From sequence record KJ019146.1: a DNA stretch of 64,000 bases; one strand, 5' to 3'. Position 1 is the stretch's first letter. Each line of letters begins with the position of its first letter. The notes beneath the pieces were generated by a model. That model was given only the letters and a program-made list of their open reading frames with translations, ran no database searches and was not told the DNA's origin. The position numbers and the translations under genes were made by a program. Positions 27,207 to 58,073 of the stretch are shown here, piece by piece.

Positions 27207-27265
27207 TGTGACAGTCGACAAACTGGCACAGGGGGGTTGGCAAACCCCCTTTTTTGTGCTATAAT
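27207..27265 (+). promoter_or_regulatory. first cassette element: palindrome + terminator-like hairpin + sigma70-type promoter
   Basis: TGTGACAGT-CGACAA-ACTGGCACA; GGGGGGTTGGCAAACCCCC-TTTTTT; TG-C-TATAAT at 27260. Confidence 0.85.
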
Positions 27266-27298
27266 AACAGGGTAGTCAAACAGAGAGGTTAGGTTCTA

Positions 27299-27649
27299 GT
27301 GGGTTTCCTGAAAGCTCTGTTTGCTACTGCCTTGGTGGGTATTGTTGGTGTGGTGTCTCCCGCCGAGGCAAGTGTAGGTGGCAATATGTCTCCAGTCGTA
27401 GAGGGTATGTGTATAAAGTACACACCCTTTGGTGATTTGCCCTGTAAGATTAGAGTATACGATAGTGAAGAACTAGTGTATATTACAGATGGTCATAATA
27501 CTATGACATATACCAAGCACCCATTCATACCATATGCGTGGACAATGTATGTGAATGAACAACGGATATCTAATATGTTATGCTCCCTAGATAAGTATAA
27601 CTTCTCTTGTTTCACCTCAATCCAATTTGTTCCTGATTATGAAAACTAA
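27299..27649 (+). CDS. hypothetical secreted-type protein
   Basis: GTG start after cassette promoter; signal peptide ending PAEA. Confidence 0.6.
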   Translation: MGFLKALFATALVGIVGVVSPAEASVGGNMSPVVEGMCIKYTPFGDLPCKIRVYDSEELVYITDGHNTMTYTKHPFIPYAWTMYVNEQRISNMLCSLDKYNFSCFTSIQFVPDYEN

Positions 27650-27971
27650 ATCATTGATGCTCACCAGTTTGATGGTGGCAACGATAACCGCAACACCTGC
27701 TATGGCATACGGATATCGTCAACCATACTATCAACAACCCCCAGTTGTTATTCAACAGCCAGCACCTGTTATCATTCAACAACCAAGACCCAGTACCCTA
27801 GAAACTGTTTTGGGTATTGCAGTTATTGGTGCAGGTTTATACTGGAATAGTCCAGCATATCAGAACGATCATGGATATTATAATGGAAATAGAAACCATC
27901 ATCACAACCAATACCAAGGTGGCAAAACATATGTAATTTGTAATGATTACGGACGGAGGTATTACTGCTGA
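27639..27971 (+). CDS. hypothetical secreted-type protein
   Basis: MKTKSLMLTSLMVATITATPAMA signal peptide; Q/P/Y-rich. Confidence 0.65.
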   Translation: MKTKSLMLTSLMVATITATPAMAYGYRQPYYQQPPVVIQQPAPVIIQQPRPSTLETVLGIAVIGAGLYWNSPAYQNDHGYYNGNRNHHHNQYQGGKTYVICNDYGRRYYC

Positions 27972-28180
27972 TGGATTTTGTGGCATTTATGATTGATAAG
28001 GAAAACGCCTTATCACTGATACAATCACTTCACGAATCTGCCGATAAGTGTAGTAAAGATGGAAGACGAATTATGGAAGCAAACTATACCAAACTAGCAG
28101 ACATGATGATGGAACAATACCTAGTATCAGAGAGTATCCACAGGAAGAGAAAAAGAAATAACGGAGATTATATCGGCTAA
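27971..28180 (+). CDS. hypothetical protein
   Basis: Stop/start coupled within operon. Confidence 0.55.
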   Translation: MDFVAFMIDKENALSLIQSLHESADKCSKDGRRIMEANYTKLADMMMEQYLVSESIHRKRKRNNGDYIG

Positions 28181-28752
28181 TGATTGACTATCTTACCATC
28201 CCTAATAGCTTATCAGACAAACTTTGTGACGACATCATTCACAAGTTTGACAGTGATGATAGAGTTGATTATGGTAAAATTAATATGGGAGATGTTGATA
28301 CTGAGGTCAAAAGATGTAAAGAGTTGTTCATATCAATCCTAGATAACTGGCGAGATCTTGACAATCAGGTATTCAATGCGTCGGTGAAGGGGTTAAGTCA
28401 ATACCGTGAGTACATTAATGAGTTATACGATGCCGATTATCTTCTAGGATCAGATAATTCTGATCAAGGTTACCGGGTAAAGAGATACGATATTGGTGAA
28501 GATTACTTTCATTGGCATCATGATCTACGCATAGATGAAAACCGTAGGATGAGATCAGTTGCCTTCATATGGTATCTAAATGATGTGGAAGAGGGTGGTG
28601 AAACAGAATTTAGTAATGGTCTAAAGATACGTCCAGAGAAAGGTAAACTACTTCTATTTCCATCTACATGGAACAACGTACACAGAGGGAATACACCAAT
28701 AAGTAATACGAAGTATGCTATTACTAGTTTCCTCTATTCCTCCTACGATTAG
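28180..28752 (+). CDS. 2OG-Fe(II) oxygenase
   Basis: WHHD, AFIWYLNDVEEGGETEF, VHRG. Confidence 0.9.
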   Translation: MIDYLTIPNSLSDKLCDDIIHKFDSDDRVDYGKINMGDVDTEVKRCKELFISILDNWRDLDNQVFNASVKGLSQYREYINELYDADYLLGSDNSDQGYRVKRYDIGEDYFHWHHDLRIDENRRMRSVAFIWYLNDVEEGGETEFSNGLKIRPEKGKLLLFPSTWNNVHRGNTPISNTKYAITSFLYSSYD

Positions 28753-28781
28753 GTGATATATACTAAGTATGGGATACTTCA

Positions 28782-29336
28782 GTGGCAAAGGGTTATCGAA
28801 TCAGGGGAGACTTTATTGCAAGTCTCATTAAACAACACGACTGTAAGATTGGTTATGAAATTGGGGTATCCAATGGTGCAACTTTTGGTAAGATCTTAAA
28901 GAAATGTGATAATATTGAGTGGCATGGTGTAGATCCATGGGTTGTATGTTCCGAGTATGATAAACGCCCCAATGGTAAGGGTAAGTGGAATCATGATGGT
29001 AACTATGAGAAAGTTCAGGAGATTGTTAGTAAGTATCCAAAGCGTGCATATACCCACCGCATGACCTCTGTAGAGGCTGCAAAGGAGGTAGAGGATAGAA
29101 GTATTGATATTATCTTTATAGACGGTCTGCACACCTACGAGGGGGTGAAGGAAGATCTAGAGGCTTGGGTGCCAAAGATCAAAATAGGTGGTATAATCTC
29201 TGGACATGACTATAAAGGTATGAAGAGACATGAGGGCGTGACTATACGAGTGAATGAAGTATTTGGTGAAGAAAACATTACTACTGGTCCAGATGTGACC
29301 TGGTGGTTATACAAAACGGAGGAACACGATGACTGA
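28782..29336 (+). CDS. class I SAM-dependent methyltransferase (Methyltransf_24-like)
   Basis: YEIGV..G, GVDPW, IFIDGLHTYEGV, GGIISGHDY. Confidence 0.85.
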   Translation: MAKGYRIRGDFIASLIKQHDCKIGYEIGVSNGATFGKILKKCDNIEWHGVDPWVVCSEYDKRPNGKGKWNHDGNYEKVQEIVSKYPKRAYTHRMTSVEAAKEVEDRSIDIIFIDGLHTYEGVKEDLEAWVPKIKIGGIISGHDYKGMKRHEGVTIRVNEVFGEENITTGPDVTWWLYKTEEHDD

Positions 29337-30090
29337 GGGTTATGTTGTTATTGCACTTGGCGATAAGTATGTTCAACTCGCCAAGAACTTTGAAGATACA
29401 CTAAGACAAAACGGTGACAATCGTCCTGTTCATGTTGTCACTGAAGACATGATTGATAAGGATAATGATAAGTATAGGGACTGTGATGTTCCCAACGAAA
29501 GGTATAACTGCTACCCCAAACTTCACTTCAATGAGTATGCGATATTTGATCATAGTATCCTAATCGATGCCGATGTTCTGTGCGTAGGTGATACCCAACA
29601 CGTTTGGGATATGTGTAAAGAACAGGAACAGTTCATTCTTCACCGTGGGTGGGGACAAGTTACTAAATGGAATAGAGAACTACAGAAGAAAGTGTGGGAC
29701 GTTCATGGGTTCGTACCTCCTCGCATTCACGGAGCTTTCTGTTATCTAAGGAAGGCAGATATCAATGAAGACTTCTTTGAATTTATCCAAAATAATGTGT
29801 GGTTTCAGTATACTGAATGGTGTACGGAAGATGTCAAAGCAAGACATCACAGGTTAAGTAGATCAGACCAGGTGATATATGCTATTGGTTATGGTAAGTT
29901 TGATCTCATGCCCTGTCAGTTAATGGAAGTCCCTATTATGACTCATATATTGACAGCGGCACACTCTAATCCTCCATACGATAGAATCACTTTTAAGGAT
30001 CAAATTGGACCCGATTTACAACATCCAGTGGCATTTGCCCATATCGAACAGCTATTTCAGGAGAGCACCCCAGAAAGTTTTCTAAGGTGA
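29329..30090 (+). CDS. GT-A glycosyltransferase (GT8-like)
   Basis: YPKLH, ILIDADVL (DxD), SDQ; stop TGA lies in the left arm of the 30086 palindrome. Confidence 0.7.
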   Translation: MTEGYVVIALGDKYVQLAKNFEDTLRQNGDNRPVHVVTEDMIDKDNDKYRDCDVPNERYNCYPKLHFNEYAIFDHSILIDADVLCVGDTQHVWDMCKEQEQFILHRGWGQVTKWNRELQKKVWDVHGFVPPRIHGAFCYLRKADINEDFFEFIQNNVWFQYTEWCTEDVKARHHRLSRSDQVIYAIGYGKFDLMPCQLMEVPIMTHILTAAHSNPPYDRITFKDQIGPDLQHPVAFAHIEQLFQESTPESFLR

Positions 30091-30170
30091 CAGTTTACGA
30101 ACTGGCACACAGGGCTTGGCAACCCTCCAAAAAGGTGCTATACTATCTAAGTAACCAAAGGAAATGATTT

Positions 30171-30392: not shown

Positions 30393-30396
30393 GCCT

Positions 30397-30983: not shown

Positions 30984-31003
30984 ACACTATCAGGAGAAAA
31001 GAG

Positions 31004-31201
31004 ATGACTACTGACCCAAACGATAAGTACGCTAAGTTCAAAGTACCATTTGGCACTAATGAACATCACGAAGATGATGAATGGGATCCCACAACTGAGG
31101 GTAAAATCTCTGATTGGCACAACCGACATCAAGATAAACTCTTAGATGAGTTTTGTGACACTCACCCAGGCGCACCCCAATGTAAGGTGTTTGACGATTA
31201 A
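31004..31201 (+). CDS. cp12: CP12-like protein (C-terminal C-x8-C motif)
   Basis: LDEFCDTHPGAPQCKVFDD matches the CP12 C-terminal motif; AGGAG RBS; TAAATA at 30977-30982. Confidence 0.65.
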   Translation: MTTDPNDKYAKFKVPFGTNEHHEDDEWDPTTEGKISDWHNRHQDKLLDEFCDTHPGAPQCKVFDD

Positions 31202-31253
31202 CAAAGTGGCACAAGACCACTTGACAGTACCACATTATTAGGTTACAGTACAT

Positions 31254-31442
31254 TTGTTCAAGAGGTTTCTCATGACTACCGTTGTTGATTCAGAGGTTAT
31301 CTTTGCTGACGCTTTCAGTGAAGATGGTATAGACTACGGAACTGGTTATTATGTAACTAAGTTCTATAGCAATGGTATGACCGACCTATTTGGACCATAC
31401 AATTTTGAGGAAGACGCCCTCAATCTTGCCACTGTTTATTGA
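31254..31442 (+). CDS. hypothetical protein
   Basis: Follows half-site plus TTGACA-17-TACAGT promoter; ATG at 31272 possible. Confidence 0.5.
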   Translation: MFKRFLMTTVVDSEVIFADAFSEDGIDYGTGYYVTKFYSNGMTDLFGPYNFEEDALNLATVY

Positions 31443-32267: not shown

Positions 32268-32514
32268 ACTATATACTACAGACAATTATTCAGGTAAAAT
32301 GAACCTAACTGAACATCAAAAGATTCAACTCTCACAATTTATTCATGAGTCATTCTCTACATTCTATGAGGAGGAACTTAAGTTTCAAGTAGAAACTCTA
32401 AAAGATGATGATAAGTTGGATTGGACTTATACAATCACACCAAGAGACTCAGGGGAGATTTATGATAAGGTTCAGGAATTATTCACACTGGAAAGGCGTG
32501 TGACAGTCGAATAA
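32260..32514 (+). CDS. hypothetical protein
   Basis: Ends VTVE* within the 32499 palindrome. Confidence 0.55.
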   Translation: MSKLYTTDNYSGKMNLTEHQKIQLSQFIHESFSTFYEEELKFQVETLKDDDKLDWTYTITPRDSGEIYDKVQELFTLERRVTVE

Positions 32515-32580
32515 GTGGCACAAGGGGGGTTGGCAAACCCCCTTTTTGCTGCCATAATATACTCATACACACAAAGACCA

Positions 32581-32709
32581 ATGAACGTCCCCAACTGGCA
32601 GAAACACTCCAAGAAAGACCAGAAGGGTCGCGGAGTGAGCAAGGGTCAGATGAGAGCCCGCAAACAGGCTCTACGTGCCCTGAAGGCAAAGCTCCTTGTG
32701 ACAGTCTAG
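32581..32709 (+). CDS. small basic hypothetical protein
   Basis: MNVPNWQKHSKKDQK; ends VTV* within the 32697 palindrome. Confidence 0.65.
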   Translation: MNVPNWQKHSKKDQKGRGVSKGQMRARKQALRALKAKLLVTV

Positions 32710-32779
32710 GAAGTGGCACAAGCCCCCTAGGCAAGACCCTCAAACCCTGCTATACTAAACACATACAAAGGAAACCACC

Positions 32780-35879: not shown

Positions 35880-36284
35880 ATGAATAAGAACAAGCACAAT
35901 GAGACTGTAGGATCTACAGTAGAAAGATCAGACGAGAGGATCAAAGACACTGGGGAGGTATTCACTCCCCTAGAACTGTGTCGTGAGATGGTTAGTGAGA
36001 TCCCCTTATCTACCCTACAAGATCCCAACTCCACCTTTTTAGATAATTCTGCTGGCTGTGGCAACTTCCTCATCGCCCTCAGGGACCGGCTATTGGAATA
36101 TCATGAGTTATCACATATCGTAGACAATATGATCTACTGTGTGGAACTTATGGAGGACAACCATAGGGAAATATGTAAGACAATGGGTGTATCTACCGAT
36201 CATCCACACTATGTAAGGGCAAATGCACTGGAATACGATTATAGCTTCGGCAACCCCGTTGGGTTGGAAGGTTTCTTCGTGTGA
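35880..36284 (+). CDS. N6-adenine DNA methyltransferase N-terminal (SAM-binding) half
   Basis: GEVFTP (motif X), FLDNSAGCGNF (motif I), IYCVEL; ends DYSFGNPVG without NPPY; stop within the 36280 palindrome. Confidence 0.8.
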   Translation: MNKNKHNETVGSTVERSDERIKDTGEVFTPLELCREMVSEIPLSTLQDPNSTFLDNSAGCGNFLIALRDRLLEYHELSHIVDNMIYCVELMEDNHREICKTMGVSTDHPHYVRANALEYDYSFGNPVGLEGFFV

Positions 36285-36363
36285 CACCTGAATAACTGTC
36301 ACAGGGGGGCTAGACGCCCCCCTTTTTTTGTGCTATACTATTCTCATACCTAACAGAAATCTA

Positions 36364-38439
36364 ATGAACATCTACATGGTAACTACAACTGAGGGCAAAG
36401 TCTTCGGGGTGGGGCAAACTAAACGTTCATATGATGAACGACATAGGGATGGTGACTGGGCGAAGTTCCACAACTATCTGAAAGCAACCGGTGGTGAGAT
36501 GGTTCTAGTTCACTGGTGGGAAGATGTGCCAGTGGTTGATACTGACATCCACAAGTTCCTGAAGAAACAGGCTGGTATTCGCAAATATGCAGAGTGGTTC
36601 TCATATAAAGGTAACCTGGATATTATTGAAAACCTCATTCAGAATGAGTTCTTCAGTGACTACCAGGATCAAAGGATTGCCCTGAACCTAAAACCCTACC
36701 AGAGAGAGTTCGTAGCTAAAGCTCAGGCAGAATACCTAGAGTTTCTGTTAGCTGCCAAGTGTAGAGCTGGTAAGAGTGTCATGGTTCTATCTCACATTGT
36801 AGACAAAGGTCATAAGGTTAGCCTGATTGTTTCTAGATTTACTTCACCATCTCAGTCATGGGTTACTGATACTAAAACCTTTGATAGGTTTGAAGGTTTA
36901 GTAACCATCAACCTGAAAGATAAGGACTGGGAAGATCAACTCAACCACTGGTTAGATACTGATAAGCAGATCGTTCTGTGGTCTACTGTTCAGGGTGTAA
37001 TTCGTAAGATCAGTAAACTTCCCTCTGTGGATCTTCTGGTGTTTGATGAAGCCCACATTGGTGATAAGGCTAAACAGTTCACCACCCTACGTGAATCGAT
37101 GGGTGATACTCCCTGCCTGAAAGTATCAGGAACTGCCTATGATCAACTGTGGGATACTACAGAGGAGAATCGTTTTGTTTATGACTACTGGCAGGAACAG
37201 ATTGACGTTCAGAAAGGTATCATTGAACGTCCCAGGATGAGTGTGGTTCTCGCCAAGTATGAGTCAGATAAGTATTCTGAACTATATGGTTCTGACCCTG
37301 ACGCTATGAAGAACCTGTTCCTAGTGGATGGTGATGAGTTCGTGGATGAGTATTTGGTTAAGGAGTTTATCTCTAAGTATTTTGATAATAACCGTTCTAT
37401 TAAACCTAAAGATCGTCTCTTATATAACTCTAATCATATCTACATGACATTACCTTCAGTGAAGGCGTGTCACCTCTTCAAAGAACTCCTAGATTCTATT
37501 ATTCCCACTAAGGTTGTAACTGGAGATACAGGATCTGATTCTGATGATATCGATAAGTTTGTTAAAGAACATAACCGTTCTGTATGTCTAACCTATTCAG
37601 CTAACGTATTAGGAACTACCCAATCTCTCTGGGATACTGTTATCAACTGCCGTGAAGGTAAGTCAGTTCAGTTCTGGACTCAGTTCGCATTCCGTGCTGG
37701 TTCTGGTGATCATAACTGGCGGGTGATTGATTTCGTCCCCTCACGAGCATTAGAATCACTTCGTGAGACTTTCTGTCTCGCTAATGATCTAGACCCCACA
37801 CTTTCAGAGTATGAGTTCACTGACTTTGTTCCTATCCATGAGTGGAATGAGAAGTTTGAAACCCTCAGTGTAGACCAGGTAAATGATATCCTGGCTGCCA
37901 ACATTGGTTCTATTTCTTCTCTTATGAGTGGTGGAACTGAGAGTATTGATGTTCAATCTCTTTCATCGGTAGAGTTTGGTTTCTTTCAGGAATACAACAA
38001 AGAGTATACCAAATCCACCACTATCAATGAACACGATAACAATGGGGGAAGTGCTAAACAGTTAGTGAGTGAGAAGAAGAAGGGTGAGAAAACAGAGATC
38101 CAGCAGAAGATTAATACCATTAAGTTTATTCTTTCTCTCATCCCTGAAGTTATTGTAAGAGAACGATCTAATGGTAATAATGTTAATACCATTCAGGATG
38201 TTATTGACGCTGAAACCTATCAGTTAATCACTGGTGATGATACTCTGTTATCTGACCTGATTGAATCTGGTATTCTATCCTCAGCATCACTAACTCGTAG
38301 GGTGAATATGACTCGTATCAGTGTAGATTCTAGCCTAAAACAACAAGAACTCACTCAAGTTCTCTCTACGTTACAAGTTGCTACAGGTGTGCAACAATCC
38401 GTCCCAGTGGGGGTCTTTGATGATATGATTCTGGCATGA
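36364..38439 (+). CDS. GIY-YIG-like nuclease fused to SF2 helicase (restriction-type)
   Basis: NIY..GVGQT.R..ERH; AKCRAGKS Walker A variant; VFDEAH; VSGT; QFAFRAGS; ATG 36364 after cassette leader. Confidence 0.75.
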   Translation: MNIYMVTTTEGKVFGVGQTKRSYDERHRDGDWAKFHNYLKATGGEMVLVHWWEDVPVVDTDIHKFLKKQAGIRKYAEWFSYKGNLDIIENLIQNEFFSDYQDQRIALNLKPYQREFVAKAQAEYLEFLLAAKCRAGKSVMVLSHIVDKGHKVSLIVSRFTSPSQSWVTDTKTFDRFEGLVTINLKDKDWEDQLNHWLDTDKQIVLWSTVQGVIRKISKLPSVDLLVFDEAHIGDKAKQFTTLRESMGDTPCLKVSGTAYDQLWDTTEENRFVYDYWQEQIDVQKGIIERPRMSVVLAKYESDKYSELYGSDPDAMKNLFLVDGDEFVDEYLVKEFISKYFDNNRSIKPKDRLLYNSNHIYMTLPSVKACHLFKELLDSIIPTKVVTGDTGSDSDDIDKFVKEHNRSVCLTYSANVLGTTQSLWDTVINCREGKSVQFWTQFAFRAGSGDHNWRVIDFVPSRALESLRETFCLANDLDPTLSEYEFTDFVPIHEWNEKFETLSVDQVNDILAANIGSISSLMSGGTESIDVQSLSSVEFGFFQEYNKEYTKSTTINEHDNNGGSAKQLVSEKKKGEKTEIQQKINTIKFILSLIPEVIVRERSNGNNVNTIQDVIDAETYQLITGDDTLLSDLIESGILSSASLTRRVNMTRISVDSSLKQQELTQVLSTLQVATGVQQSVPVGVFDDMILA

Positions 38440-39449
38440 ACAAACCCCAAACCTTCCTAATTATCGGCGACCCTTCGGGTATCCATACACTTAGACTCAT
38501 TGAACGTGGTATTAGTCCAGACAATATCACTGTCTGGGAAGATACTACAAAGGGGATGAACTGTGTTAAAATGTCTAATGTGTCAGTAACTAACGATCTA
38601 GAGGAACTAACCGGTATGAAATTTGACGTTATTGTTGGTAACCCACCCTATGGTTCTGGTGGTAATGATGCCATTAAGTTTTTGAATAAGTGTGGTGATC
38701 TATCTGATGATGTTCGTCTAGTTCTTCCACTCTCTGTTCGTAAAGTTTCATCGGTCAATAAGATCAGACTTGATATGATTTGTGTTGAAGATAATAAACT
38801 ACCTGATGATACTTTCCCTGGTGGTATCAGAACTGTTCTCCAAAGATGGGTCAAGACTGATACATTGAGAGATAAGATTGAGACCTTTACTACACACCCA
38901 GACTTTGAGTTTGTGAGTCGAGACGAGGCAGATATTTGTCTTGGTCGTATTGGTGGTGGACCTGCTGGTAAGTTACATCGTGAGTGGTCAGAACGTGCTG
39001 ATGAGAGTCACTACTTCATCAAATATCTTGGTAAAGATGTAGAACGTAACCTCACACAGATTCAACCTGAACTCAGACAGATCGCAACCACAACGTGTAA
39101 CGGTATTCCAACATTAGCGAAGAATGATGTTGTAACCACCTACATCAAACACTTTGGTAGAGGTAAGATTGCCACACAGACAACACACCCAGACTTTGAA
39201 TTCGTGAAGAAAGGTGACCCTAACACCAACGTATTTGTGATGAGATCTGGTCACGCAGGTAAGGTATTGACAGAGGGTTATGATGATTATGAGTGGTCAC
39301 ATTACTTCATCCACGCCAAGACACCTGAGGTGATTGAGTCACTCAAACAGTGTGAGACTAAGTTCCGTGAGTTGGCTAAGATGACAAACGGTATGGATAA
39401 ACTATCTAAGCATGAGTTAGTAACAACTTATATGGAGTGTGACACTTGA
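38436..39449 (+). CDS. adenine methyltransferase catalytic half (NPPY) with duplicated target-recognition-like domain
   Basis: FDVIVGNPPY, RLVLP; TTHPDFEFV...SHYFI...VTTY twice; ends CDT* in the 39438 palindrome. Confidence 0.75.
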   Translation: MNKPQTFLIIGDPSGIHTLRLIERGISPDNITVWEDTTKGMNCVKMSNVSVTNDLEELTGMKFDVIVGNPPYGSGGNDAIKFLNKCGDLSDDVRLVLPLSVRKVSSVNKIRLDMICVEDNKLPDDTFPGGIRTVLQRWVKTDTLRDKIETFTTHPDFEFVSRDEADICLGRIGGGPAGKLHREWSERADESHYFIKYLGKDVERNLTQIQPELRQIATTTCNGIPTLAKNDVVTTYIKHFGRGKIATQTTHPDFEFVKKGDPNTNVFVMRSGHAGKVLTEGYDDYEWSHYFIHAKTPEVIESLKQCETKFRELAKMTNGMDKLSKHELVTTYMECDT

Positions 39450-39519
39450 ATAACTGGCACAAGGGGGGTAGGCACCCCCCTTTTTTTGTGCCATAATAGG
39501 TCTATACCAAACCAATACT

Positions 39520-40191: not shown

Positions 40192-40377
40192 CACCCGAAG
40201 AATTTGAAGAGAACGCAAGAATTATCACGGGTGACCCAACATGGTCCCTAGATGATGATGTGACAGTTGAGGAAGTGGCACACACTTCCCCGCAAACACC
40301 CTGAAACCTGTTATCTTATAGGAGTGGGAGAGATACACCCCCCACACCAAACAAACCCCCTACAACCCCTTCTAAGT

Positions 40378-41318: not shown

Positions 41319-41450
41319 CCGATATGGATTTTTACGAGTTTGGGTCTAGTGCCTGACTGGGTTCTCAGGGGCATCAAACCCCCATATCACTCCGATACCA
41401 CCCCCCTATGCCAAACCACAAACCATTGTGACAGTTGGACTAGTGGCACA
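41319..41450 (+). repeat. second non-coding repeat, copy A
   Basis: First 60 nt match 50711-50770 at 48/60 ungapped; ends in palindrome with spacer TGGACT. Confidence 0.85.
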
Positions 41451-41532
41451 ACCCCCCTAGACAAACCCACAGCAGTCGTGTATTGTATAGAAGTGGAGGG
41501 GAGACCCACCACACAAACCACTAACTAACCAA

Positions 41533-41744: not shown

Positions 41745-41990
41745 ATGAACACAACAACAATCAACATTCTCAAATCACTGGACATTCTTTCCACTTTGAT
41801 TCAAGCATTCTATGAGATTGGATATGAACTTGGCACCTTCTATCGCAACCATCTCCATTCACATGTAAAGTTTGCTATTGAATACTCTGGTCTCGTTATT
41901 CGTGAGACCTATAGTAACCGCCAAGAGTATTTCACAAAACTGAATAACCTTCGCAACCAAGCTGGTTCATACTTTGTTTATAGCGTGTGA
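41745..41990 (+). CDS. hypothetical protein
   Basis: Stop is the TGA in the 41986 palindrome. Confidence 0.6.
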   Translation: MNTTTINILKSLDILSTLIQAFYEIGYELGTFYRNHLHSHVKFAIEYSGLVIRETYSNRQEYFTKLNNLRNQAGSYFVYSV

Positions 41991-42070
41991 CAGTTGAGGA
42001 AGTGGCACAAGCCCCCTAGGCAAACCCCTCAGGGGGTGCTATACTATATTCATACCAAAGGGAACCACCC

Positions 42071-42313: not shown

Positions 42314-42390
42314 GATACTGGCACAAGGGGGGTTGGCAAGACCCCTCAAAACCCCTATACTAAACACATACCAAACAAAGGGAACAACCC

Positions 42391-42642: not shown

Positions 42643-42727
42643 GATGTGACAGTTGGGGAAGTGGCACACGCTTCCCCACAAACCACTCCATACCTGCTAT
42701 ACTAAACACATACCAAAGGAACCCAAC

Positions 42728-43687: not shown

Positions 43688-43935
43688 ACAACCCTTTCGA
43701 CTCACTAACTACCGAAGAGTTTATCTCTCTATATGATGCATGTGCTCTCTCTGAACAAATGTGGAGGGAGCGCTCCCGTTCTATAAAAGCAGGGGAGTCA
43801 CGTTGGTTTTTAGATGGCGAACCTATGTTTACTGAGGAGGAATGTCGCTCAGAAATGAAACGATACCGTGAGTTACAGAAGCGAGTTTCCTGGTTCTCCC
43901 TCACACCAGAAGAGATGGCGCGTGTGACAGTCTAG
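43684..43935 (+). CDS. hypothetical protein
   Basis: Ends VTV* in the 43923 palindrome. Confidence 0.6.
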   Translation: MNNPFDSLTTEEFISLYDACALSEQMWRERSRSIKAGESRWFLDGEPMFTEEECRSEMKRYRELQKRVSWFSLTPEEMARVTV

Positions 43936-44004
43936 AAACTGGCACAACCCCCCTAGGCAAACCCCTCCTTTTCTGCTATACTATTCACATACAGACAAAA
44001 CACT

Positions 44005-44910: not shown

Positions 44911-45104
44911 TGGTTGACTTCGATACTCTAACTCACGAAGAACTAGAGAGACTATCTGATGACTGTGAAGACTTTCTTCTTCATAGAAATATACCTCTAA
45001 GGTCACATTCTTATGAGAATATCATCAGACATGCTATCTCGGAGGGATACCAACTCTCTCGGTATCCTGGTGTGACACCTGGGAAACTGGCACAAGACCC
45101 CTAG
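44910..45104 (+). CDS. hypothetical protein
   Basis: DCEDFLL; reads through the 45071 palindrome. Confidence 0.55.
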   Translation: MVDFDTLTHEELERLSDDCEDFLLHRNIPLRSHSYENIIRHAISEGYQLSRYPGVTPGKLAQDP

Positions 45105-45154
45105 GCAACCCCATCCTCACCTGTTATACTATATTCATACCAAACAAACAACCC

Positions 45155-47058: not shown

Positions 47059-47268
47059 ATGTCTTCACCATCAGCATTCACACCAGCATTAGGTCTAGAA
47101 GTTGAATACAGGGGATTTGTGGGTTATATCAAGTTTATAGATGAAGAATATTTAACAGTGTGTGTGAAGAAGAAAGAGCACCAAATGTTTGGTGATGTTT
47201 GTATGGTTGTGTATCCAAGTCAGTGGGAACACATTAAACTAATGGGCGGACCTCACAGAGACCGATAG
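47059..47268 (+). CDS. hypothetical protein
   Basis: GYIKFIDEEYLTVC; TAG stop is in the left arm of the 47266 site. Confidence 0.6.
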   Translation: MSSPSAFTPALGLEVEYRGFVGYIKFIDEEYLTVCVKKKEHQMFGDVCMVVYPSQWEHIKLMGGPHRDR

Positions 47269-47349
47269 GACAGCTGAGGAAGTGGCACAAGGGGGCTAGG
47301 CAAGCCCCCTTTTCTGTGCTATACTATATTCATACCAAAGGAAACCACC

Positions 47350-47955
47350 ATGGCAGAAGTTCAACTCCACGGCAATATCTATGAGGAGACTGTTATTCGG
47401 GATATAACTGGACTAGACAAGTCTGCTTATGATAAGACTAAAAAGAATGGTTATACTAGCGTTTGGGATATAGAAAAAGGTGAGTATAGTGACAACAATA
47501 TTAGCATAAAGACTACCGGTAGTAATACAGTTTGTATGGGTGACGCTGTTCGTATGGCTTCACATACCAGTTATAACTTGGTTGTTGGTGTATATGATCA
47601 GAGGGGAAACACCAAAGTTTTCACCACTGAGTATACTTTTTATATCACTGACGCTGACACCAAAAAGATATGGGGCACCATGGAGGTTGGCGAGGTCACT
47701 GCTTTTGTGGACTTTGTAAAGTCTATTCCACACGGAAAAGAGGGGCAAACCTCCACCAAAGAATATAGGAATGAGTTTTTATCACAAATACAAGACAAAT
47801 CAGCACTTATGGTTATAAACCCCAAAGTAGACAGCAAAAAGCAACGTAGGGTTCAGTGCTCTATGAGGCTCAGCCAGTTGTTAGAATCTGGGGTAAAATA
47901 TACTAAGAAAGATATGAACCTCCAAGTCTCTTCTTCCCGCCGTAAGTTCAATTAG
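47350..47955 (+). CDS. putative PD-(D/E)XK nuclease (type II restriction-like)
   Basis: HG..YE, WDI, ISIKTTG..VCMGD; single-gene cassette flanked by terminator-type elements. Confidence 0.5.
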   Translation: MAEVQLHGNIYEETVIRDITGLDKSAYDKTKKNGYTSVWDIEKGEYSDNNISIKTTGSNTVCMGDAVRMASHTSYNLVVGVYDQRGNTKVFTTEYTFYITDADTKKIWGTMEVGEVTAFVDFVKSIPHGKEGQTSTKEYRNEFLSQIQDKSALMVINPKVDSKKQRRVQCSMRLSQLLESGVKYTKKDMNLQVSSSRRKFN

Positions 47956-48054
47956 TATATGGTGACATGTGACACCTGAATAACTGGCACAAGGGGGGTT
48001 CGCAACCCTCCTTTTTTATGCTATACTATATTCATACCAAAGGGAACCACCCCC

Positions 48055-48201
48055 ATGACTATCAACTTTAAAAGTCTATTCATCACCACTTGTGTGGGTC
48101 TCACCCTAATACTAGGGAGCTTCGCTTTTACCAGTGATTATGGTACTGAGACCGGGCGTGGCGAACAGACTGAGAGCCCCTACTACGGACCCGCTTTCTA
48201 A
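48055..48201 (+). CDS. small membrane/secreted peptide (48 aa, not in ORF track)
   Basis: MTINFKSLFITTCVGLTLILGSFAF; single-gene cassette. Confidence 0.6.
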   Translation: MTINFKSLFITTCVGLTLILGSFAFTSDYGTETGRGEQTESPYYGPAF

Positions 48202-48269
48202 AGTGGCACAAGGGGGGTTGGCAATACCCTCTACACCTGCTATACTAAACACATACCAAACAAAGAACC

Positions 48270-48425
48270 ATGTTCAAACTTCAACTCCAGTGGCAGAAAG
48301 AAGGTGAGTGGATTGATACAGTATACGCTCCTACAGAATACGCAACCGCATCTGTTCGTCTGAAGAAGTATCAGAAACTCTGGGGTGATACTCACACCTA
48401 TCGCCTCCTCGATGTGACAGTCTGA
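48270..48425 (+). CDS. small hypothetical protein (51 aa, not in ORF track)
   Basis: MFKLQLQWQKEGEWIDTVY; ends VTV* in the 48413 palindrome. Confidence 0.65.
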   Translation: MFKLQLQWQKEGEWIDTVYAPTEYATASVRLKKYQKLWGDTHTYRLLDVTV

Positions 48426-48495
48426 GAACTGGCACAAGGGGGGTAGACAAGACCCCCCACACCTGCTATACTAAACACATACCAAACAAAGAACC

Positions 48496-48810: not shown

Positions 48811-48966
48811 ATGTTTGTATCCTTCACTGAAATCCAAGACTACATTCGCGAAGATCAATACACATATAGTGAGCGCCAGTTCCGCTCACGCAAGTATAAA
48901 AAGAACGAACGTCGTTACCAACGTCGCCAGAAACAACAACAAAGAGACCGCACCTACGACGTGTGA
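48811..48966 (+). CDS. small basic protein (51 aa, not in ORF track)
   Basis: R/K/Q-rich; stop in the 48962 palindrome. Confidence 0.55.
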   Translation: MFVSFTEIQDYIREDQYTYSERQFRSRKYKKNERRYQRRQKQQQRDRTYDV

Positions 48967-49045
48967 CAGTTGGAGAAGTGGCACACGCTTCTCCACAAAC
49001 CCCTAAGGGGGTGCTATACTATATTCATACCAAAGGGAACCACCC

Positions 49046-49270
49046 ATGACCACCACCACTCCAAACCTCTACAACGAAGCTATCCGTCGTTTGGCTGATG
49101 GTTTCTCTTCAGAGTTCGCTGAGTTCTGTGCAGGAGACGAGAGGGTTCACGAGATCATGATGGACCTCGCTAGTGAGTTCGTAGAAACCAATATCCCTGT
49201 AGTGAGTGAGGATAGCCAGCACGACGTGGCTTCTGAGCTCCTCATGAGTATCACAGTCACCAAGGTGTGA
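49046..49270 (+). CDS. acidic hypothetical protein
   Basis: Single-gene cassette; stop in the 49266 palindrome. Confidence 0.65.
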   Translation: MTTTTPNLYNEAIRRLADGFSSEFAEFCAGDERVHEIMMDLASEFVETNIPVVSEDSQHDVASELLMSITVTKV

Positions 49271-49350
49271 CAGTCTAGGAACTGGCACAAGGGGGGTTGG
49301 CACCACCCCCCAAACCCCTTATAATAAACACATACCAAACAACCCAGACC

Positions 49351-50710: not shown

Positions 50711-50841
50711 CCGATATGGATTTTTCACCCTTTCCGTCTAGTGGCTCACTGGGTTCTCAGTGGGACCAAAATGAGAATCCACCCCCATACCCCCAGACGG
50801 AACAAAACTCATAACCATGTGACAGTTGGACTAGTGGCACA
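50711..50841 (+). repeat. second non-coding repeat, copy B
   Basis: CCGATATGGATTTTT..GTCTAGTG..ACTGGGTTCTCAG; palindrome with spacer TGGACT 107 nt after start. Confidence 0.85.
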
Positions 50842-50898
50842 CGCTTTCCCGCAAACCCCTCAGGGGCTGCTATACTAAACCCATACACAACAAAACCA

Positions 50899-51255: not shown

Positions 51256-51563
51256 AACGCTACGGACTTTATTGGCTGAGAGCTATCACCCTAGGTGCTG
51301 GTCTAAACTTTGTTCTGACTGGTTATCTCATGGGTCACCAAAAGTGGAAGTTTCAACATGCAGCTCCACTCTCAGCGTTTATCTGTGTGAATCTATCGTA
51401 TGTGGCGGATCGTCTTATCTTTGGTGATAAGAAGGAACCTGAAGATTTAGATCCAGATACTATTGTTATATCAACCCCACATTGTTGCCCCGTATGTTCA
51501 GAGTATCCTTGCACTTGTGACAGTTGGGAAAGTGGCACAAGCCCCCTAGGCAACACCCTCTGA
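51252..51563 (+). CDS. hypothetical two-helix membrane protein
   Basis: Two hydrophobic segments; reads through the 51516 palindrome. Confidence 0.55.
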   Translation: MKRYGLYWLRAITLGAGLNFVLTGYLMGHQKWKFQHAAPLSAFICVNLSYVADRLIFGDKKEPEDLDPDTIVISTPHCCPVCSEYPCTCDSWESGTSPLGNTL

Positions 51564-51599
51564 ACCTGCTATACTAAACACATACCAAAGGAACCAACC

Positions 51600-51826: not shown

Positions 51827-52108
51827 ATGACACGCACTCCAATGACAGTCACCCTCAAGCGTAGCGACTGGGAATGTTACACAGACACCCCCGATACTAT
51901 CATCGAAACTATCAACTCATACTTCTCTTATGTGTTATCAACTAAAGATAACGCGTTTGATGCACAGTCTGAGATATTCAAGTTTCTGAATATGTTTAGT
52001 GAGTTTGGGTTTATGGATAGTGAGTGCCTAGAATGTGCAACTAGAGTTATCAATCGTTACTTTGATTCATATCTCTCCCGATGGAGCCAGACAGGTGTGA
52101 CAGTCTAA
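51827..52108 (+). CDS. hypothetical protein
   Basis: EFGFMDSEC; ends VTV* in the 52096 palindrome. Confidence 0.65.
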   Translation: MTRTPMTVTLKRSDWECYTDTPDTIIETINSYFSYVLSTKDNAFDAQSEIFKFLNMFSEFGFMDSECLECATRVINRYFDSYLSRWSQTGVTV

Positions 52109-52180
52109 GAAGTGGCACACGCTTCTCCGCAAACCCCTCTGGGTCTGCTATACTATATTCATACCAAAGGGATACGACCC

Positions 52181-52660
52181 ATGACCACCACAACCCCAAC
52201 TTCAGTCACCGTGGGTAAAGGATACTTCTCAACCGCTGAAGCCTACGTCTGGCAGGGTGATGTGGATGATATGGGTAACGAAGTAAACTATGATAATCTT
52301 AGAGAGGATTATGGTGATGTAGTTCATGACATCCTGAACACTGAAGAGTGTGGTGAGTATGTTCAACCCCATGATGAGTTCCCTTATGAGACCCGCACAT
52401 TTGAAGAGTGGGTTATTGAAGAGTTTGGTCCTATGAGCCAAACTAAACCCATCCTGATTAAGAGCTGGGTTCGGAGATACGCAACTCTGATCACTGATGA
52501 TAACTGGGAAACCTACTATTCTGATGATTATGGCAGTGGTGATTGGGGCGCCGATGAAACCCTCATCTACAAAGGTGTGATCATCCCACAGAGCAAGCGT
52601 GAAGAGTTGGCTAACAAGGTAGAATTTCCTCACCCATATGTTGGTGAGTGTGACAGCTGA
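52181..52660 (+). CDS. acidic hypothetical protein
   Basis: Single-gene cassette; ends CDS* in the 52649 palindrome. Confidence 0.65.
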   Translation: MTTTTPTSVTVGKGYFSTAEAYVWQGDVDDMGNEVNYDNLREDYGDVVHDILNTEECGEYVQPHDEFPYETRTFEEWVIEEFGPMSQTKPILIKSWVRRYATLITDDNWETYYSDDYGSGDWGADETLIYKGVIIPQSKREELANKVEFPHPYVGECDS

Positions 52661-52733
52661 AGAAGTGGCACAAGCCCCCTAGGCAAGAGCCCTCGGGTCT
52701 GCTATACTATATTCATACCAAAGGGAACCACCC

Positions 52734-52967
52734 ATGTTGATCTTCAATCAGGAAACCGCATACGAAAACCTACGATCCTATCTTGTTGAACAGTGGGAAT
52801 TGTTAGATGAGGATGAGCGTCCTGAGGGGGATGTGAATGATTATGTTATTGATAGGTTGGATGATGTAGCAGAAGAACTTTGGAATGAAAGGGGAGAGGA
52901 TGTTCCTTCTATAGATGATTTGACATATTCGTGTGGTGTATTGTTAGGTCATATTGATGAAGTGTGA
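52734..52967 (+). CDS. very acidic small protein
   Basis: About 23 D/E vs 4 R and no K in 77 aa (hand count); stop in the 52963 palindrome. Confidence 0.65.
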   Translation: MLIFNQETAYENLRSYLVEQWELLDEDERPEGDVNDYVIDRLDDVAEELWNERGEDVPSIDDLTYSCGVLLGHIDEV

Positions 52968-53045
52968 CAGTTGAGGAAGTGGCACACGCTTCCCCCAAAA
53001 CCCCTCAGGGGGTGCTATACTATATTCATACCAAACAAAGAAACC

Positions 53046-53347: not shown

Positions 53348-53521
53348 ATGAACCGACTAGAACTACTGACCCAACGTGAACAACTGATGGAGAGGATTGA
53401 CTCTATCTGTGATGAATTCTTTTATAAGAACTATAATGGAGACACATCAGAAGCAGATGAATTAGTTCGTATTCTATGTGATGCTGTTTGTGAAACCATA
53501 GACCCAGCGGGCATGGTGTGA
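53348..53521 (+). CDS. small hypothetical protein (57 aa, not in ORF track)
   Basis: EQLMERID..LVRILCDAVC; stop in the 53517 palindrome. Confidence 0.6.
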   Translation: MNRLELLTQREQLMERIDSICDEFFYKNYNGDTSEADELVRILCDAVCETIDPAGMV

Positions 53522-53601
53522 CAGTTGGAGAAGTGGCACAAGCCCCCTAGGCAAACCCCTCTATACCTGCTATACTATATTCATACCAAAGGAAACCGAC
53601 C

Positions 53602-53865: not shown

Positions 53866-53954
53866 TGTGACAGTTGGAGAAGTGGCACAAGCCCCCTAGG
53901 CAAGAGCCCCCATACCTGCTATACTAAACACATACCAAACAAAGGGAACAACCC

Positions 53955-54179
53955 ATGACCACCTACAACTACTTCGTCACTACTGATACTGATGACTTCA
54001 CCGATGATAATGGTGACTTCCAAGTATCACTGATGACCCAGAAGGTCTCTTCTACCACCCCTCTCACTGATGAGGACGCCTATGATGTCGCTTGTGACTC
54101 TGGTGACTGGAAGGTATATTATGGCGAAGGCGAAGAAGCGAAGGTTGGTACCTATGAGGTAGAAACCATCGCCAGTTGA
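53955..54179 (+). CDS. acidic small protein
   Basis: About 17 D/E vs 3 K in 74 aa (hand count); stop in the 54168 site. Confidence 0.65.
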   Translation: MTTYNYFVTTDTDDFTDDNGDFQVSLMTQKVSSTTPLTDEDAYDVACDSGDWKVYYGEGEEAKVGTYEVETIAS

Positions 54180-54254
54180 ACAACCGGCACACTAGGGGGC
54201 GACAACGCCCTCTAAACCTGTTATACTACATTCATACCAAACAAAGGAAACCAC

Positions 54255-54596: not shown

Positions 54597-54678
54597 TGTG
54601 ACAGTCACCAAAGTGGCACAGGGGGGCTAGGCAGCTCCCCTTCTTTATGCTATACTATATTCATACCAAAGGAACCAG

Positions 54679-55932: not shown

Positions 55933-55933
55933 T

Positions 55934-56062
55934 ATGAATTATCAAAACCAAGCTCTTGTGATACTTCTAGGTCTAATGATTATAGCTGGTATTAACGTAC
56001 TTCACTATGAACAACAATGGCAATGTAGGATGCATCAAACCTATTGTTTTGTTTCTGAATAA
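55934..56062 (+). CDS. possible small membrane peptide (42 aa)
   Basis: ALVILLGLMIIAGINVL; overlaps the convergent endonuclease 3' end. Confidence 0.35.
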   Translation: MNYQNQALVILLGLMIIAGINVLHYEQQWQCRMHQTYCFVSE

Positions 56063-56751
56063 TACCATAGGTAACCTTTCCAACGCGAACCCCATTTGAT
56101 AGAAGTACATATACCCTTGCCACGATCCTCTTCATTAAAGGATCTCATCGCATCACTAATAGAGTCAAAGACGGGAGTAACATGACCAGTCTTATGAACT
56201 CCATAGACTTGTTTCTTATTCTTAGCGTGTTTATGAATCCACCATTTGTAACCATATGCCGAACCCTCTCTTGTGATACTTCTCCTGATATTTGATGGCC
56301 TACCATTCACAAACTCAGCGGCAGCAACCCAACCATGAAAGGTCTTTATCTTACCCGTTTCCAAGCACCTACATTTGATCACGTTCTTATCATGTTTCTT
56401 AGGTTTCTTCTTTCGTTGATAACCCCAACGCCTATCCCCTTTATGATATGACTCTTTATTATTCAGCTTCCTACCAGTATGTTCTAACACCAAATTGTTA
56501 TACTCAGGGTTATACTTATTCATCCAATATTCCACTCTCTCTTTAACCTTATTCTCATTCACTTCTTCTAGTATACGTATAGTGAAGTCATCGGAGTTAT
56601 AGTAAGATAAGGCATTACTCAGTGGAGTATTTTCCTCCTTATGATTTTCCAATATACGAGCCCAAACTTTATTCAGGGGAAGCGTATCATAACCGATGTA
56701 TTTGTGAGAGGTTTGTCTATTCAAGATGATGTAGATGTTTGTGATGCTCAC
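56041..56751 (-). mobile_element. free-standing GIY-YIG homing endonuclease with NUMOD1-like HTH repeats
   Basis: NIYIILN..HKYIG.., P.YN; two modules TFHGWVAAAEFV and VFDSISDAMRSF each followed by GY.W. Confidence 0.75.
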
Positions 56752-57217
56752 GGAAGATACTCTCTATTCTGATTGTATATATAAACATTATCATTTTTTA
56801 TCACATATCGTTGTTCATCTCCCTATTGGATGTTATAATAGAAAGGAAGAGATAAACGTATATAACCAATGGAATCACCTAGGTAAGGATGAATAGAATA
56901 ACCAATAGATTAACCTAGTAAGAAGTTATCTAATAGAAGGTAATCGTATAGGGGAAGGTGAATAGAAAGCCCTATAGAAAGCCCCCTATAATAGTATCAT
57001 ATAACGAGGTCTTTACAGCTCACTAAGCTTCTCCTAAACTCCACTGCCCGTTGCTACCTAAGCCCACCCTACCACGGGATTCCATTTTTGCCAAGGGATC
57101 TCCGAAAAACTTAATATTTCCCCTCCCCATGTGCCAATACCCAAACTGGCACACAAAAGCCCGCAAACCCCCCGAAATGGCATATACTATATTCATACCA
57201 AACAAAGGGAACAACCC

Positions 57218-57451
57218 ATGGAATTCATCCAAACTGACTACCCCGCTAACATGGCCCCCAACGTTATGGAAAGGAACTATGGTCGGGGTATCATCCTGAC
57301 TCAGGTCGATGAGGATGGTGTCATCCCATTCTCAGTATTCAATTTCAAAAAAGAGGATTGGAACTGGGGAGCTGACTACTACATGACCGAGCATAACTTC
57401 TATACACTAGAAGAGGCAGAGGCGGTAGTGACTCAGCTCGTAGCCAGCTGA
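57218..57451 (+). CDS. hypothetical protein
   Basis: ATG after cassette leader; stop in the 57440 site. Confidence 0.65.
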   Translation: MEFIQTDYPANMAPNVMERNYGRGIILTQVDEDGVIPFSVFNFKKEDWNWGADYYMTEHNFYTLEEAEAVVTQLVAS

Positions 57452-57524
57452 ACCACTGGCACATGGGGGCTAGGCACAGCCCCCTCTATACCCTATACTA
57501 TATTCATACACAAGGGAACACCCC

Positions 57525-57680
57525 ATGACCAAAGCAACTCAGAGACCTTCCACCCAGAGCCGTTACACCAGTCAGGTAGCCATGGATCGTAAGGCAGCTG
57601 CAGCCCAGAGGGCAGAGGAGCGTCGCCTCACTGGTCGGACCACAGAGGAGAGGATCAATGACCTCTATGTGACACTCTGA
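57525..57680 (+). CDS. small hypothetical protein (51 aa, not in ORF track)
   Basis: Single-gene cassette ending VTL* in the 57668 palindrome. Confidence 0.6.
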   Translation: MTKATQRPSTQSRYTSQVAMDRKAAAAQRAEERRLTGRTTEERINDLYVTL

Positions 57681-57753
57681 GAACTGGCACAAACCCCCTT
57701 GACCGGGGACCAGTTTTACCCTATACTATATTCATACCAAACAAACCAAGACC

Positions 57754-57969
57754 ATGACCAACCTTCAGAACTTAGACCAGATTCTCTCTACACTCCCCGC
57801 TGGTGTTACCCCCTCCATCAAAGTTCTTAAGACCCGCGGACCCCGTAAGGGTGAGTTGGTTTGTGAGCGTGTGGGTGGAGCTAAAACAGCCTGGAGACCC
57901 TCTGTAAAGGCAGGTCACGCTAGCCGCCGTCAGATCAAAGGGAACACCCCACAGGCTGTGACACTCTGA
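57754..57969 (+). CDS. small basic hypothetical protein
   Basis: IKVLKTRGPRK; ends VTL* in the 57957 palindrome. Confidence 0.65.
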   Translation: MTNLQNLDQILSTLPAGVTPSIKVLKTRGPRKGELVCERVGGAKTAWRPSVKAGHASRRQIKGNTPQAVTL

Positions 57970-58073
57970 TAACTGGCACAACCCCCCTAGGCACCACCCC
58001 CTCTATACCCTATAATATAGAGGTAGGGGGGGAAACCACTCTACACTCACTCTAAACACTCTACTCTAAAACC

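Follow-up and report, generated by a model that had tools for sequence, protein, structure and literature searches.

Promoter cassettes with a conserved 24-bp palindrome in a T4-like cyanophage: modular gene exchange and a putative host-factor operator

Mobile early promoter/stem-loop cassettes (PeSLs) have been described in the T4-type phages RB49/phi1, T4/PST and KVP40/nt-1 (PMC2839356, PMC4122927). A study of the cyanophage S-PM2 considered them too sparse to matter there (PMC4503421). The present analysis concerns an array of 33 promoter cassettes in a T4-like cyanophage, each containing all or half of a 24-bp imperfect palindrome (the 24-mer). The DNA analysed, referred to below as the window, comprises 64,000 nucleotides and corresponds to bases 1-64000 of the record KJ019146.1, with the same coordinates. 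The array occupies positions 27207-58073, a hyperplastic region in which the cassettes are co-oriented on the + strand with 1-13 small open reading frames (ORFs) between them. With moderate confidence we propose that the cassettes are immediate-early promoters carrying a 24-bp operator for a host factor, likely of the PlmA type, and that they recombine by homology.

A second system for comparison is the host element CGRE1, described in PMC6191309. It is a palindrome of 21-22 nt that begins 55-57 nt 5' of the transcription start site (TSS) of the yfr2 small-RNA genes of Prochlorococcus and of marine Synechococcus. The GntR-family protein PMM1637, an orthologue of PlmA, was pulled down with CGRE1, and its shift in the electrophoretic mobility shift assay was lost in the R50A mutant. 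Activation by the protein was seen in an E. coli reporter; with a mutated DNA-binding domain, both shift and activation disappeared. Regulators of this type are described there as present in all cyanobacteria and exclusively there, and yfr2 as induced by high light and nitrogen starvation. PlmA has been linked to PII-PipX and to thioredoxin (PMC7344720). Phages are not mentioned in PMC6191309, nor in the other open papers that use the term CGRE1.

Architecture and conservation of the cassettes

The record KJ019146.1 is the genome of Synechococcus phage ACG-2014f isolate Syn7803C16 (225,418 bp), a T4-like cyanomyovirus (Kyanoviridae, Atlauavirus). The array region is bounded by tail-fibre genes, which end at 27199, and by the gp25/gp6 baseplate genes at 61.8 kb. 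It consists of about 85 small + strand ORFs, nearly all annotated as hypothetical. The pattern TGTGMCASTN6ASTGKCACA has 21 exact matches in the window, against 0 expected. With up to three mismatches there are 30 matches against 0.46 expected, every one on the + strand, and 29 of these 30 fall within 27207-57980. The remaining match at 13624-13647 (GGTGCCACTGGAGCAACTGGAGCA, 3 mismatches) is located in a repetitive structural-gene stretch and appears chance-like. Four other cassettes (42302, 48187, 54168 and 57440) have only a half-site, in which the promoter-proximal arm is kept, and their promoter and leader are complete.

An earlier note on this DNA, made from the sequence alone, had described the palindrome, its uniform orientation and a set of 30 palindromes plus 3 half-sites. 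The palindrome and the orientation are borne out by these counts. The total of 33 cassettes at 27.2-58.1 kb also stands, but it is divided into 29 full and 4 half-site copies. No copy had been noticed in the structural-gene blocks, and apart from the chance-like match there is indeed none at 1-27 kb or 58-114 kb; the replication blocks likewise contain none. This picture needs correction for the whole 225-kb genome, where three further copies are found, 5' of cobS (115617), ORF 215 (157415) and psbA (171837). Thus 33 of the 36 copies in the genome are located at 27-58 kb among hypothetical ORFs.

Each cassette is a promoter unit of about 85 bp at the head of one of 33 groups of small accessory genes. 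The aligned units read TGTGACAGT-N6-A(G/C)TGGCACA, 7 nt, a -35-like hexamer, 17 nt, TGcTATACT, a leader and ATG, and the ideal form of the palindrome is TGTGACAGTT-N4-AACTGTCACA. The -35-like hexamer is TAGGCA in twelve copies and TTGGCA in four, with CCGCAA among the other forms; it is weak, with a mean of 3.9 of 6 matches. The sequence TGcTATACT represents an extended -10 box. Counted from the first base of the 24-mer, the -10 hexamer (TATACT or TATAAT) starts at +54 or +55 in 27 of the 29 full copies, in agreement with the gap of 29-30 nt from palindrome to -10 box that had been noted before. The leader (ATATT/AAACA)CATACCAAAgg leads to the ATG, and in 26 of 29 copies the annotated coding sequence (CDS) begins between +81 and +92. 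In 18 of 29 copies the upstream CDS has its stop codon within the 24-mer, so that the cassette makes up the whole linker between genes. By sequence, the units present a sigma70-like early promoter (-35, about 17 nt, -10) followed by a translation start, as is characteristic of PeSLs.

The arms of the palindrome are the best-conserved segment of the cassette. The mean top-base frequency is 0.93-0.95 in the arms, 0.55-0.71 in the remaining cassette and 0.35 in the upstream flank, and at least three sequence classes can be told apart in the 30 nt next to the palindrome. The two arms tend to differ from each other: a CAGTT arm is paired with a CACTT arm in 94 of 125 copies from the window and the listed matches of the viral database IMG/VR, while about 61 would be expected under independent arm variation.

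A scan of IMG/VR with the exact pattern gave at least 120 stretches. Among the matches listed, 119 copies form a non-redundant set, with differences at more than 15 of 56 nt between their downstream sequences. TAnnnT is found at +54 to +56 in 80 of these 119 (background 2.4 per offset) and TTG exactly at +32 in 39, and the median ORF start is +85. Because these offsets are fixed in such diverged copies, the register between palindrome and promoter is conserved amid otherwise full divergence. Among the contigs are P-SSM7, a Prochlorococcus phage, and S-SSM7-like phages. When only the left 18 nt are prescribed, viral contigs show GGCACA, GTCACA, GTCCAC, GGAACA or another form as the right arm, and the position of the promoter is unchanged. 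In the phage Syn9 a variant whose right arm differs, TGTGACAsT-N6-AgGTGTCCAC, stands 5' of gp63, gp68, gp73 and gp75 (helicase) at 46-49 kb. Doron et al. in 2016 (ISME J) are said to have described a 'novel regulatory element' of the early genes of Syn9 and other T4-like cyanophages, with no binding factor. We presume that the 24-mer is probably this same element. In the open literature searched, neither a binding factor nor a link to host yfr2 genes is reported for the cyanophage early element.

In the Microcystis siphovirus Mic1, a stretch of 20.8 kb (MN013189.1 51292-72106) contains 45 copies with no more than 2 mismatches. On the gene strand they read ATGCCAGTTTAGAAAGTGTCACA-7-TGGACA-17-CATAAT-leader-ATG. 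This phage differs from ACG-2014f in morphotype and host, and the two have no shared gene set. The motif is not peculiar to ACG-2014f. In the Mic1 array, chiefly at 1-6200 of the 20.8-kb stretch, many copies stand in pairs spaced by 58 nt, and the long runs that they form contain few annotated genes. The opposite strand also offers a possible TTGACA-17-TAGAT promoter, and the small ORFs after the promoters carry no annotation. This stretch of Mic1 may hold an array of promoters, or it may act as a decoy for a host factor. Phage-type cassettes (palindrome, promoter, small ORF) were also found in JBJBBP010000001.1 ('Synechococcus sp. CUG2217', 193,981 bp) and in eight contigs of bacterial metagenome-assembled genomes (MAGs). 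These contigs resemble mis-binned cyanophage DNA, and JBJBBP010000001.1 is as large as a complete T4-like cyanophage genome.

Host yfr2 promoters and the putative operator

The exact pattern was also scanned against one genome per prokaryotic species (596 Gb). There are 71 matches, 19 of them cyanobacterial, while about 69 are expected at random if equal base frequencies are assumed. Chance is sufficient for this total, and therefore only the cyanobacterial subset at yfr2 genes is meaningful. Nine of the 19 cyanobacterial matches (Nostocales, a Synechococcales MAG and Cyanothece) are located 40 nt 5' of a Cyano-1 RNA (RF01701) beginning GUGUGUGAGGAG. The order at these sites is palindrome, 7 nt, -35-like hexamer, 17 nt, -10 (TATTCT), 6 nt and RNA start, which is the phage layout. 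Cyano-1 would correspond to the Yfr2 family, as its 5' motif complements the Yfr1 motif, and this assignment is supported by PMC6778093. The palindrome was also found 5' of protein-coding genes, namely an SRPBCC-like ORF in two Tumidithrix species and a ribbon-helix-helix-like ORF in Iphinoe; these sites may be further members of the host regulon.

A test that is not biased by the palindrome is provided by metagenomic yfr2 genes fetched by their RNA sequence, whose upstream regions were scored with the phage matrix. Seven of 20 distinct upstream regions outscore all 361 control windows, and in every case the match starts 63-67 nt before GTGTGAGGAG. The AT-rich copies, similar to those of high-light (HL) Prochlorococcus, read TGTGACAGTTGA(A/G)(A/G)AACT; their first 18 nt agree with the consensus of the phage copies when R stands at the two variable positions of the spacer. 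At the level of sequence, the phage-type element and CGRE1 share the promoter position, overlap in sequence and stand before genes of one family.

These features argue that the palindrome is a protein operator, which is favoured over a site for a recombinase and over an RNA hairpin. Its regulator probably comes from the host, as early promoters have to be active at a time when there is no phage protein yet. The most likely binder, judging from the yfr2 promoters, is the PlmA-type GntR activator of these genes, and we infer that the phage 24-mer is the same operator as CGRE1. Inferred, too, are the position of the TSS, expression early in infection, an activating and not a repressing role, and which protein binds.

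The following mechanism can be proposed. If the TSS is 7 nt after the -10 box, the operator would extend from about -66 to -43, centred near -54. It would be followed by a linker of 7 bp, the weak -35, a spacer of 17 bp, the extended -10, a leader of about 25 nt and the ATG. The -10 would be read by host RNA polymerase (RNAP) with the housekeeping sigma factor (RNAP-SigA). A dimeric host activator on the 24-mer would offset the poor -35 by recruiting RNAP-SigA, and all 30-odd units would fire together upon entry of the DNA. Through a factor of the PlmA type, infection would begin in step with the host's light, nitrogen and redox state. Regulators of this type are universal in cyanobacteria, and this would account for the use of one element by unrelated cyanophages. 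The copy upstream of psbA would be consistent with a regulon linked to light and redox state.

A broader scenario is more speculative. Unrelated cyanophages, both T4-like myoviruses of marine Synechococcus and Prochlorococcus and Mic1-type siphoviruses of Microcystis, might each have adopted the host yfr2 operator and promoter as an immediate-early switch, so that PlmA licenses infection in accordance with light, nitrogen and redox conditions and the copies titrate it. We regard this as a tentative idea, less likely to be right than wrong. If the scenario is true, the 36 copies found here, or the at least 45 in Mic1, multiplied by replication, would titrate the regulator from the Yfr2 response of the host.

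Several points weigh against a PlmA-bound operator. No site is found by the strict pattern in marine Synechococcus or Prochlorococcus chromosomes in the scan of one genome per species. The asymmetric base is flipped: TGTGACA is the distal form in the T4-like phages, and TGTGCCA at most host yfr2 sites and in Mic1. According to PMC6191309, the MED4 genome has no other occurrence of CGRE1, and the element is confined to marine picocyanobacteria. The flanks given there (GTTG/GTTA) and the centre (like GTGA(T)CAC) are not obviously those of the phage 24-mer, and a literal reconstruction, GTTG-N3-GTGWCAC-N3-CAAC, has 0 metagenome matches 5' of yfr2. The IMG/VR copies were selected by the palindrome itself, so that the conserved spacing is the independent evidence they offer, and not the conservation of the palindrome. 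In addition, the extended -10 could render the promoters independent of an activator, and a site at -66 to -43 could equally suit a repressor.

It is also necessary to consider a regulator encoded by the phage. This could be an early protein that closes the early regulon at the early-to-middle switch, or a protein delivered with the virion. The operator is co-oriented across the regulon and adjoins the -35, most early ORFs are uncharacterised, and T4-like cyanophages lack MotA and AsiA (PMC5780444), so that another timing device is needed. However, the same element is found at host yfr2/Cyano-1 genes of Nostocales, Cyanothece and Synechococcales and in an unrelated siphovirus. Because this siphovirus has no common gene set with the T4-like phage, the sharing indicates a host protein, and a phage regulator as the primary binder seems rather unlikely. 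A phage protein that competes for the site of the host factor could be compatible with a host operator.

The host RNAP might instead read the element directly, through an alternative sigma factor or through the C-terminal domain of its alpha subunit in the style of an UP element, with no transcription factor involved. The fixed register with the -35 and -10 would suit this, as would the presence of the element in strong promoters of both abundant small RNAs (sRNAs) and phage early genes. A 24-bp dyad containing G and C is, however, unlike the A/T-rich UP elements, and the dyad suggests a dimer. Moreover, the Prochlorococcus yfr2 promoter retained the GntR protein, and mutation of the DNA-binding domain removed both the shift and the activation (PMC6191309). 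We give direct reading little credence.

The phage ACG-2014f encodes a 230-aa RpoD-like protein of the sigma-70 family by annotation, within KJ019146.1 139556-140248. Its gp43 DNA polymerase is split into two ORFs with two small ORFs between them (KJ019146.1 122215-125231). Two look-alikes of the palindrome were set aside, the sigma-54 -24 box (TGGCAC) and the CRP site (TGTGA-N6-TCACA): the spacing, TGTGA-N14-CACA, does not fit, and cyanobacteria are not known to possess sigma-54.

With respect to the literature searched, three points appear to be new. The element and its register are common to the phage cassettes and the host yfr2/Cyano-1 promoters of various cyanobacteria, including lineages said to lack CGRE1. 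They are likewise common to the cassettes and the Microcystis siphovirus Mic1. The factor that sets off cyanophage infection thereby gains a testable candidate in a PlmA-type regulator. For the start of transcription in T4-like cyanophages, which lack MotA, AsiA and a standard -35, a concrete candidate can now be named from sequence. If it is correct, the first infection step of the ocean's main primary producers would be tied to host light and nitrogen signalling, the almost unknown PlmA regulon would be enlarged, the sharing of the motif among unrelated cyanophages would be explained, and a compact, portable cyanobacterial promoter module would be supplied.

Gene exchange at the cassettes

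The region 24-63 kb of the window was compared with six other ACG-2014f isolates (US36, US37, C12, C24, C29 and C90). Fifteen of 27 unique indel breakpoints are located within cassettes, which make up 9.9% of the 27-58 kb region (binomial P about 5e-9). In eight of the 18 indel or replacement events within 27-58 kb both ends are in cassettes. The flanking alignments (high-scoring segment pairs, HSPs) overlap by 31-89 nt, and this overlap is the repeat itself. Orthologous cassettes are mosaic between isolates.

A swappable module of 3.1 kb at 36364-39449, with weak DNA-methylase-like Pfam matches, is bordered by the cassettes 36280-36363 on the left and 39438-39519 on the right, both having a hairpin and a T-run. 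US37 and C90 have a methyltransferase-plus-helicase module in its place, US36 and C29 have shorter segments, and in C12 it is cleanly absent. The C12 crossover covers positions 10-19 of the 24-mer at 39438, and that of the US37 module is located between the hairpin and the -10. The somewhat larger stretch 35880-39449, with its weak N6-methylase/Eco57I-methylase-like Pfam matches, looks like an exchangeable DNA-modification (anti-restriction) module.

Smaller units behave in the same way. The unit 47266-47967, formed by a cassette with a hairpin and the left arm TAGGACAGC (47266-47349) and by a 201-aa ORF, is found only in this isolate and C24, and its crossover is the -10/leader shared with the next cassette (47968-48054). 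Segment 52170-52959 contains two units here and one different ORF elsewhere. Its left edge is the cassette 52096-52180, where the C24 crossover at 52.1 kb covers positions 12-24 of the 24-mer, and its right edge is the cassette 52963-53045. Further units are gained or lost at 42.6, 53.9 and 57.7 kb. At 42645-42727 an extra cassette and ORF are present in US36, C90 and C12 (HSP overlap 81 nt), the ORF97 unit after the cassette 53866-53954 is missing from five relatives, and at 57668-57753 the C24 crossover covers positions 1-13 of the 24-mer. In each mapped case the crossover is the longest stretch identical between both cassettes.

The cassettes serve as crossover points for gene exchange between related phages. 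The position of the crossovers in the longest identical stretch points to homologous shuffling of the PeSL kind. The phage encodes UvsX, UvsY, UvsW and gp46/47, and its own homologous recombination would delete, insert or exchange the ORFs between such near-identical direct repeats. The standardised plug-in cassettes that the earlier note had suggested are supported by this result; the comparison of cassette order among close relatives, which it had put forward as a check, gives gain, loss and replacement of genes bounded by the cassettes.

The 24-mer might also be the core site of a site-specific recombinase that moves the ORF cassettes in the manner of integron attC sites. Its inverted arms flank a short spacer, the units are bounded by copies of it, and the three resolvable crossovers inside it share positions 12-13, the dyad centre. 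However, the crossovers of the 47.3-kb unit and of the US37 module are outside the 24-mer, and the choice of the longest identical stretch is what homology-driven exchange predicts. The annotation of the 285 genes names no integrase or recombinase, and none was found by Pfam in the 20 larger cargo ORFs, the many small ORFs being unscanned; the same Pfam search gave no DNA-binding regulator, just weak methylase-like matches. A recombination site offers no reason for a fixed distance to -35 and -10, both in phages and at single-copy host sRNA genes, and cassettes with only the proximal half-site persist as promoters. Site-specific activity at the 24-mer is not needed to explain the data, even with the shared dyad centre, and we consider a dedicated recombinase very improbable. 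The interpretation in the earlier note, in which the palindrome was either a recombination site or an operator, is therefore supported in part: the plug-in cassettes hold, the operator is much the better supported of its two options, and the dedicated recombination site can be dispensed with.

Homologous exchange also raises the question of whether the cassettes are ordinary repeated early promoters, with a palindrome conserved merely as a result of recent copying. Cassettes within a phage are homogenised by recombination and gene conversion. Nevertheless, the arms are much better conserved than the adjoining 30 nt with their several sequence classes, and element and spacing are retained alongside fully diverged promoters and leaders, and in host genomes. 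This explanation is hardly credible.

A second source of variation is formed by homing endonucleases. The gene at 56041-56751, the sole minus-strand gene in the region, is annotated as 'cox1-i7 protein'/HNH endonuclease and has a weak NUMOD1 match. In the relatives, extra HNH endonuclease insertions are found at 53.7, 59.4 and 61.4 kb, and these are not bounded by cassettes.

A separate hairpin with a G5-6 run and a C5-6 run (-12 to -17 kcal/mol) is present in 9-10 of 29 copies, with a T-run in 5-7 of these. It is placed 3' of the 24-mer and has the -35 in its loop; the other copies have a weak hairpin or none. In the first cassette (27207-27298) it is a terminator-like G6/C5 hairpin with a T-run, followed by a -10 TATAAT at 27260. 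A G/C hairpin with a T-run is also found at 32499-32580, and a hairpin at 54597-54678, 5' of the helicase gene. In the cassettes that have it, about a third, this hairpin would terminate the transcript of the upstream unit. An Rfam scan of the window gave no known RNA family at the cassettes.

The least credible proposal is that the palindrome itself works in RNA as a 3' hairpin of the upstream transcript (terminator, stabiliser or RNase site): it does lie at the 3' end of the upstream ORF and some copies fold at -6 to -9 kcal/mol, but many reach just -1 to -3 kcal/mol, no U-run follows the palindrome, the likely termination sites use the separate G/C hairpin, the element at host yfr2 genes sits 5' of the RNA start, and of the 125 non-redundant viral copies listed, 94 have G/G or C/C, and just 31 a complementary pair, at positions 8 and 17, the sole arm pair that varies. 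A cruciform was rejected on the same grounds of pairing and folding energy.

The remaining cassettes, all on the + strand, can be described briefly. The one at 30086-30170 has one mismatch in the 24-mer and the upstream CDS stop codon within it, and that at 31190-31271 has a degenerate left arm (3 mismatches) and the -35 TTGACA. The cassettes 32697-32779 and 45071-45154 head units of 13 and 8 ORFs, respectively, and the cassette 57130-57217 has the left arm TGTGCCAAT. Those at 41986-42070, 43923-44004, 48413-48495, 48962-49045, 49266-49350, 50818-50898, 51516-51599, 52649-52733 and 53517-53601 have the general form. Among the partial cassettes, the right half-site stands alone at 42302-42390 (promoter and leader complete), 48187-48269 and 57440-57524, while at 54168-54254 the palindrome is degenerate, TCGCCAGT-N6-ACCGGCACA.

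In three cassettes the leader exceeds that of the others by 20-35 nt and contains G-rich/C-rich hairpins such as GGAGTGGGAGAGATACACCCCCCAC. In the cassette 40259-40377 the -10 is weak, the long leader is structured and the CDS starts at +119. The cassette 41427-41532 has its CDS at +106, and relatives have an insertion at 41489-41520. In the final cassette, 57957-58073, the CDS starts at +117. Similar long leaders also occur in IMG/VR contigs and may be regulatory 5' untranslated regions or small RNAs.

Comparison with known systems

The early-gene element of Doron et al. belongs to the same phage group and gene class as the 24-mer, and Syn9 has the variant of the 24-mer in its region of small genes.

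The 24-mer resembles CGRE1 in being a palindrome of similar size at an overlapping position 5' of a weak -35. In the phage register, the yfr2 promoters recovered have TGTGACAGTTGArrAACT or else the complete dyad. It differs in that the flanks, the centre and the start at -55 to -57 that are given for CGRE1 cannot be matched letter by letter to the 24-mer.

The array is similar to integrons with attC sites in its co-oriented small ORFs, each bounded by an imperfect palindrome, and in its gain and loss by cassettes. The differences are that no integrase is annotated here, that each unit has its own promoter, that crossovers are not confined to the palindrome and that the palindrome is locked in register with the promoter.

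The cassettes also resemble PeSLs, and the comparison with them made in the earlier note was apt, as breakpoints and crossovers in the cassettes behave as in PeSLs. Both are small repeats of a sigma70-type early promoter, with a stem-loop that here is found in part of the copies, and end at the start codon, and both are concentrated in hyperplastic regions between ORFans. In both, the indels and replacements of close relatives are bounded by the units, with crossovers scattered inside them, and the G-run/C-run stem recalls the stem of RB49. The cassettes differ in that their best-conserved module is a non-terminator dyad of 24 bp 5' of the -35, that the G/C hairpin is restricted to about a third of copies and encloses the -35, and that the host is a cyanobacterium. 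The comparison of the seven isolates provides a clear cyanophage example of modular shuffling of the PeSL type, which turns over accessory genes that differ between wild cyanophage genotypes, DNA-methylase-like modules among them. The cassette array is a cyanophage counterpart of PeSLs.

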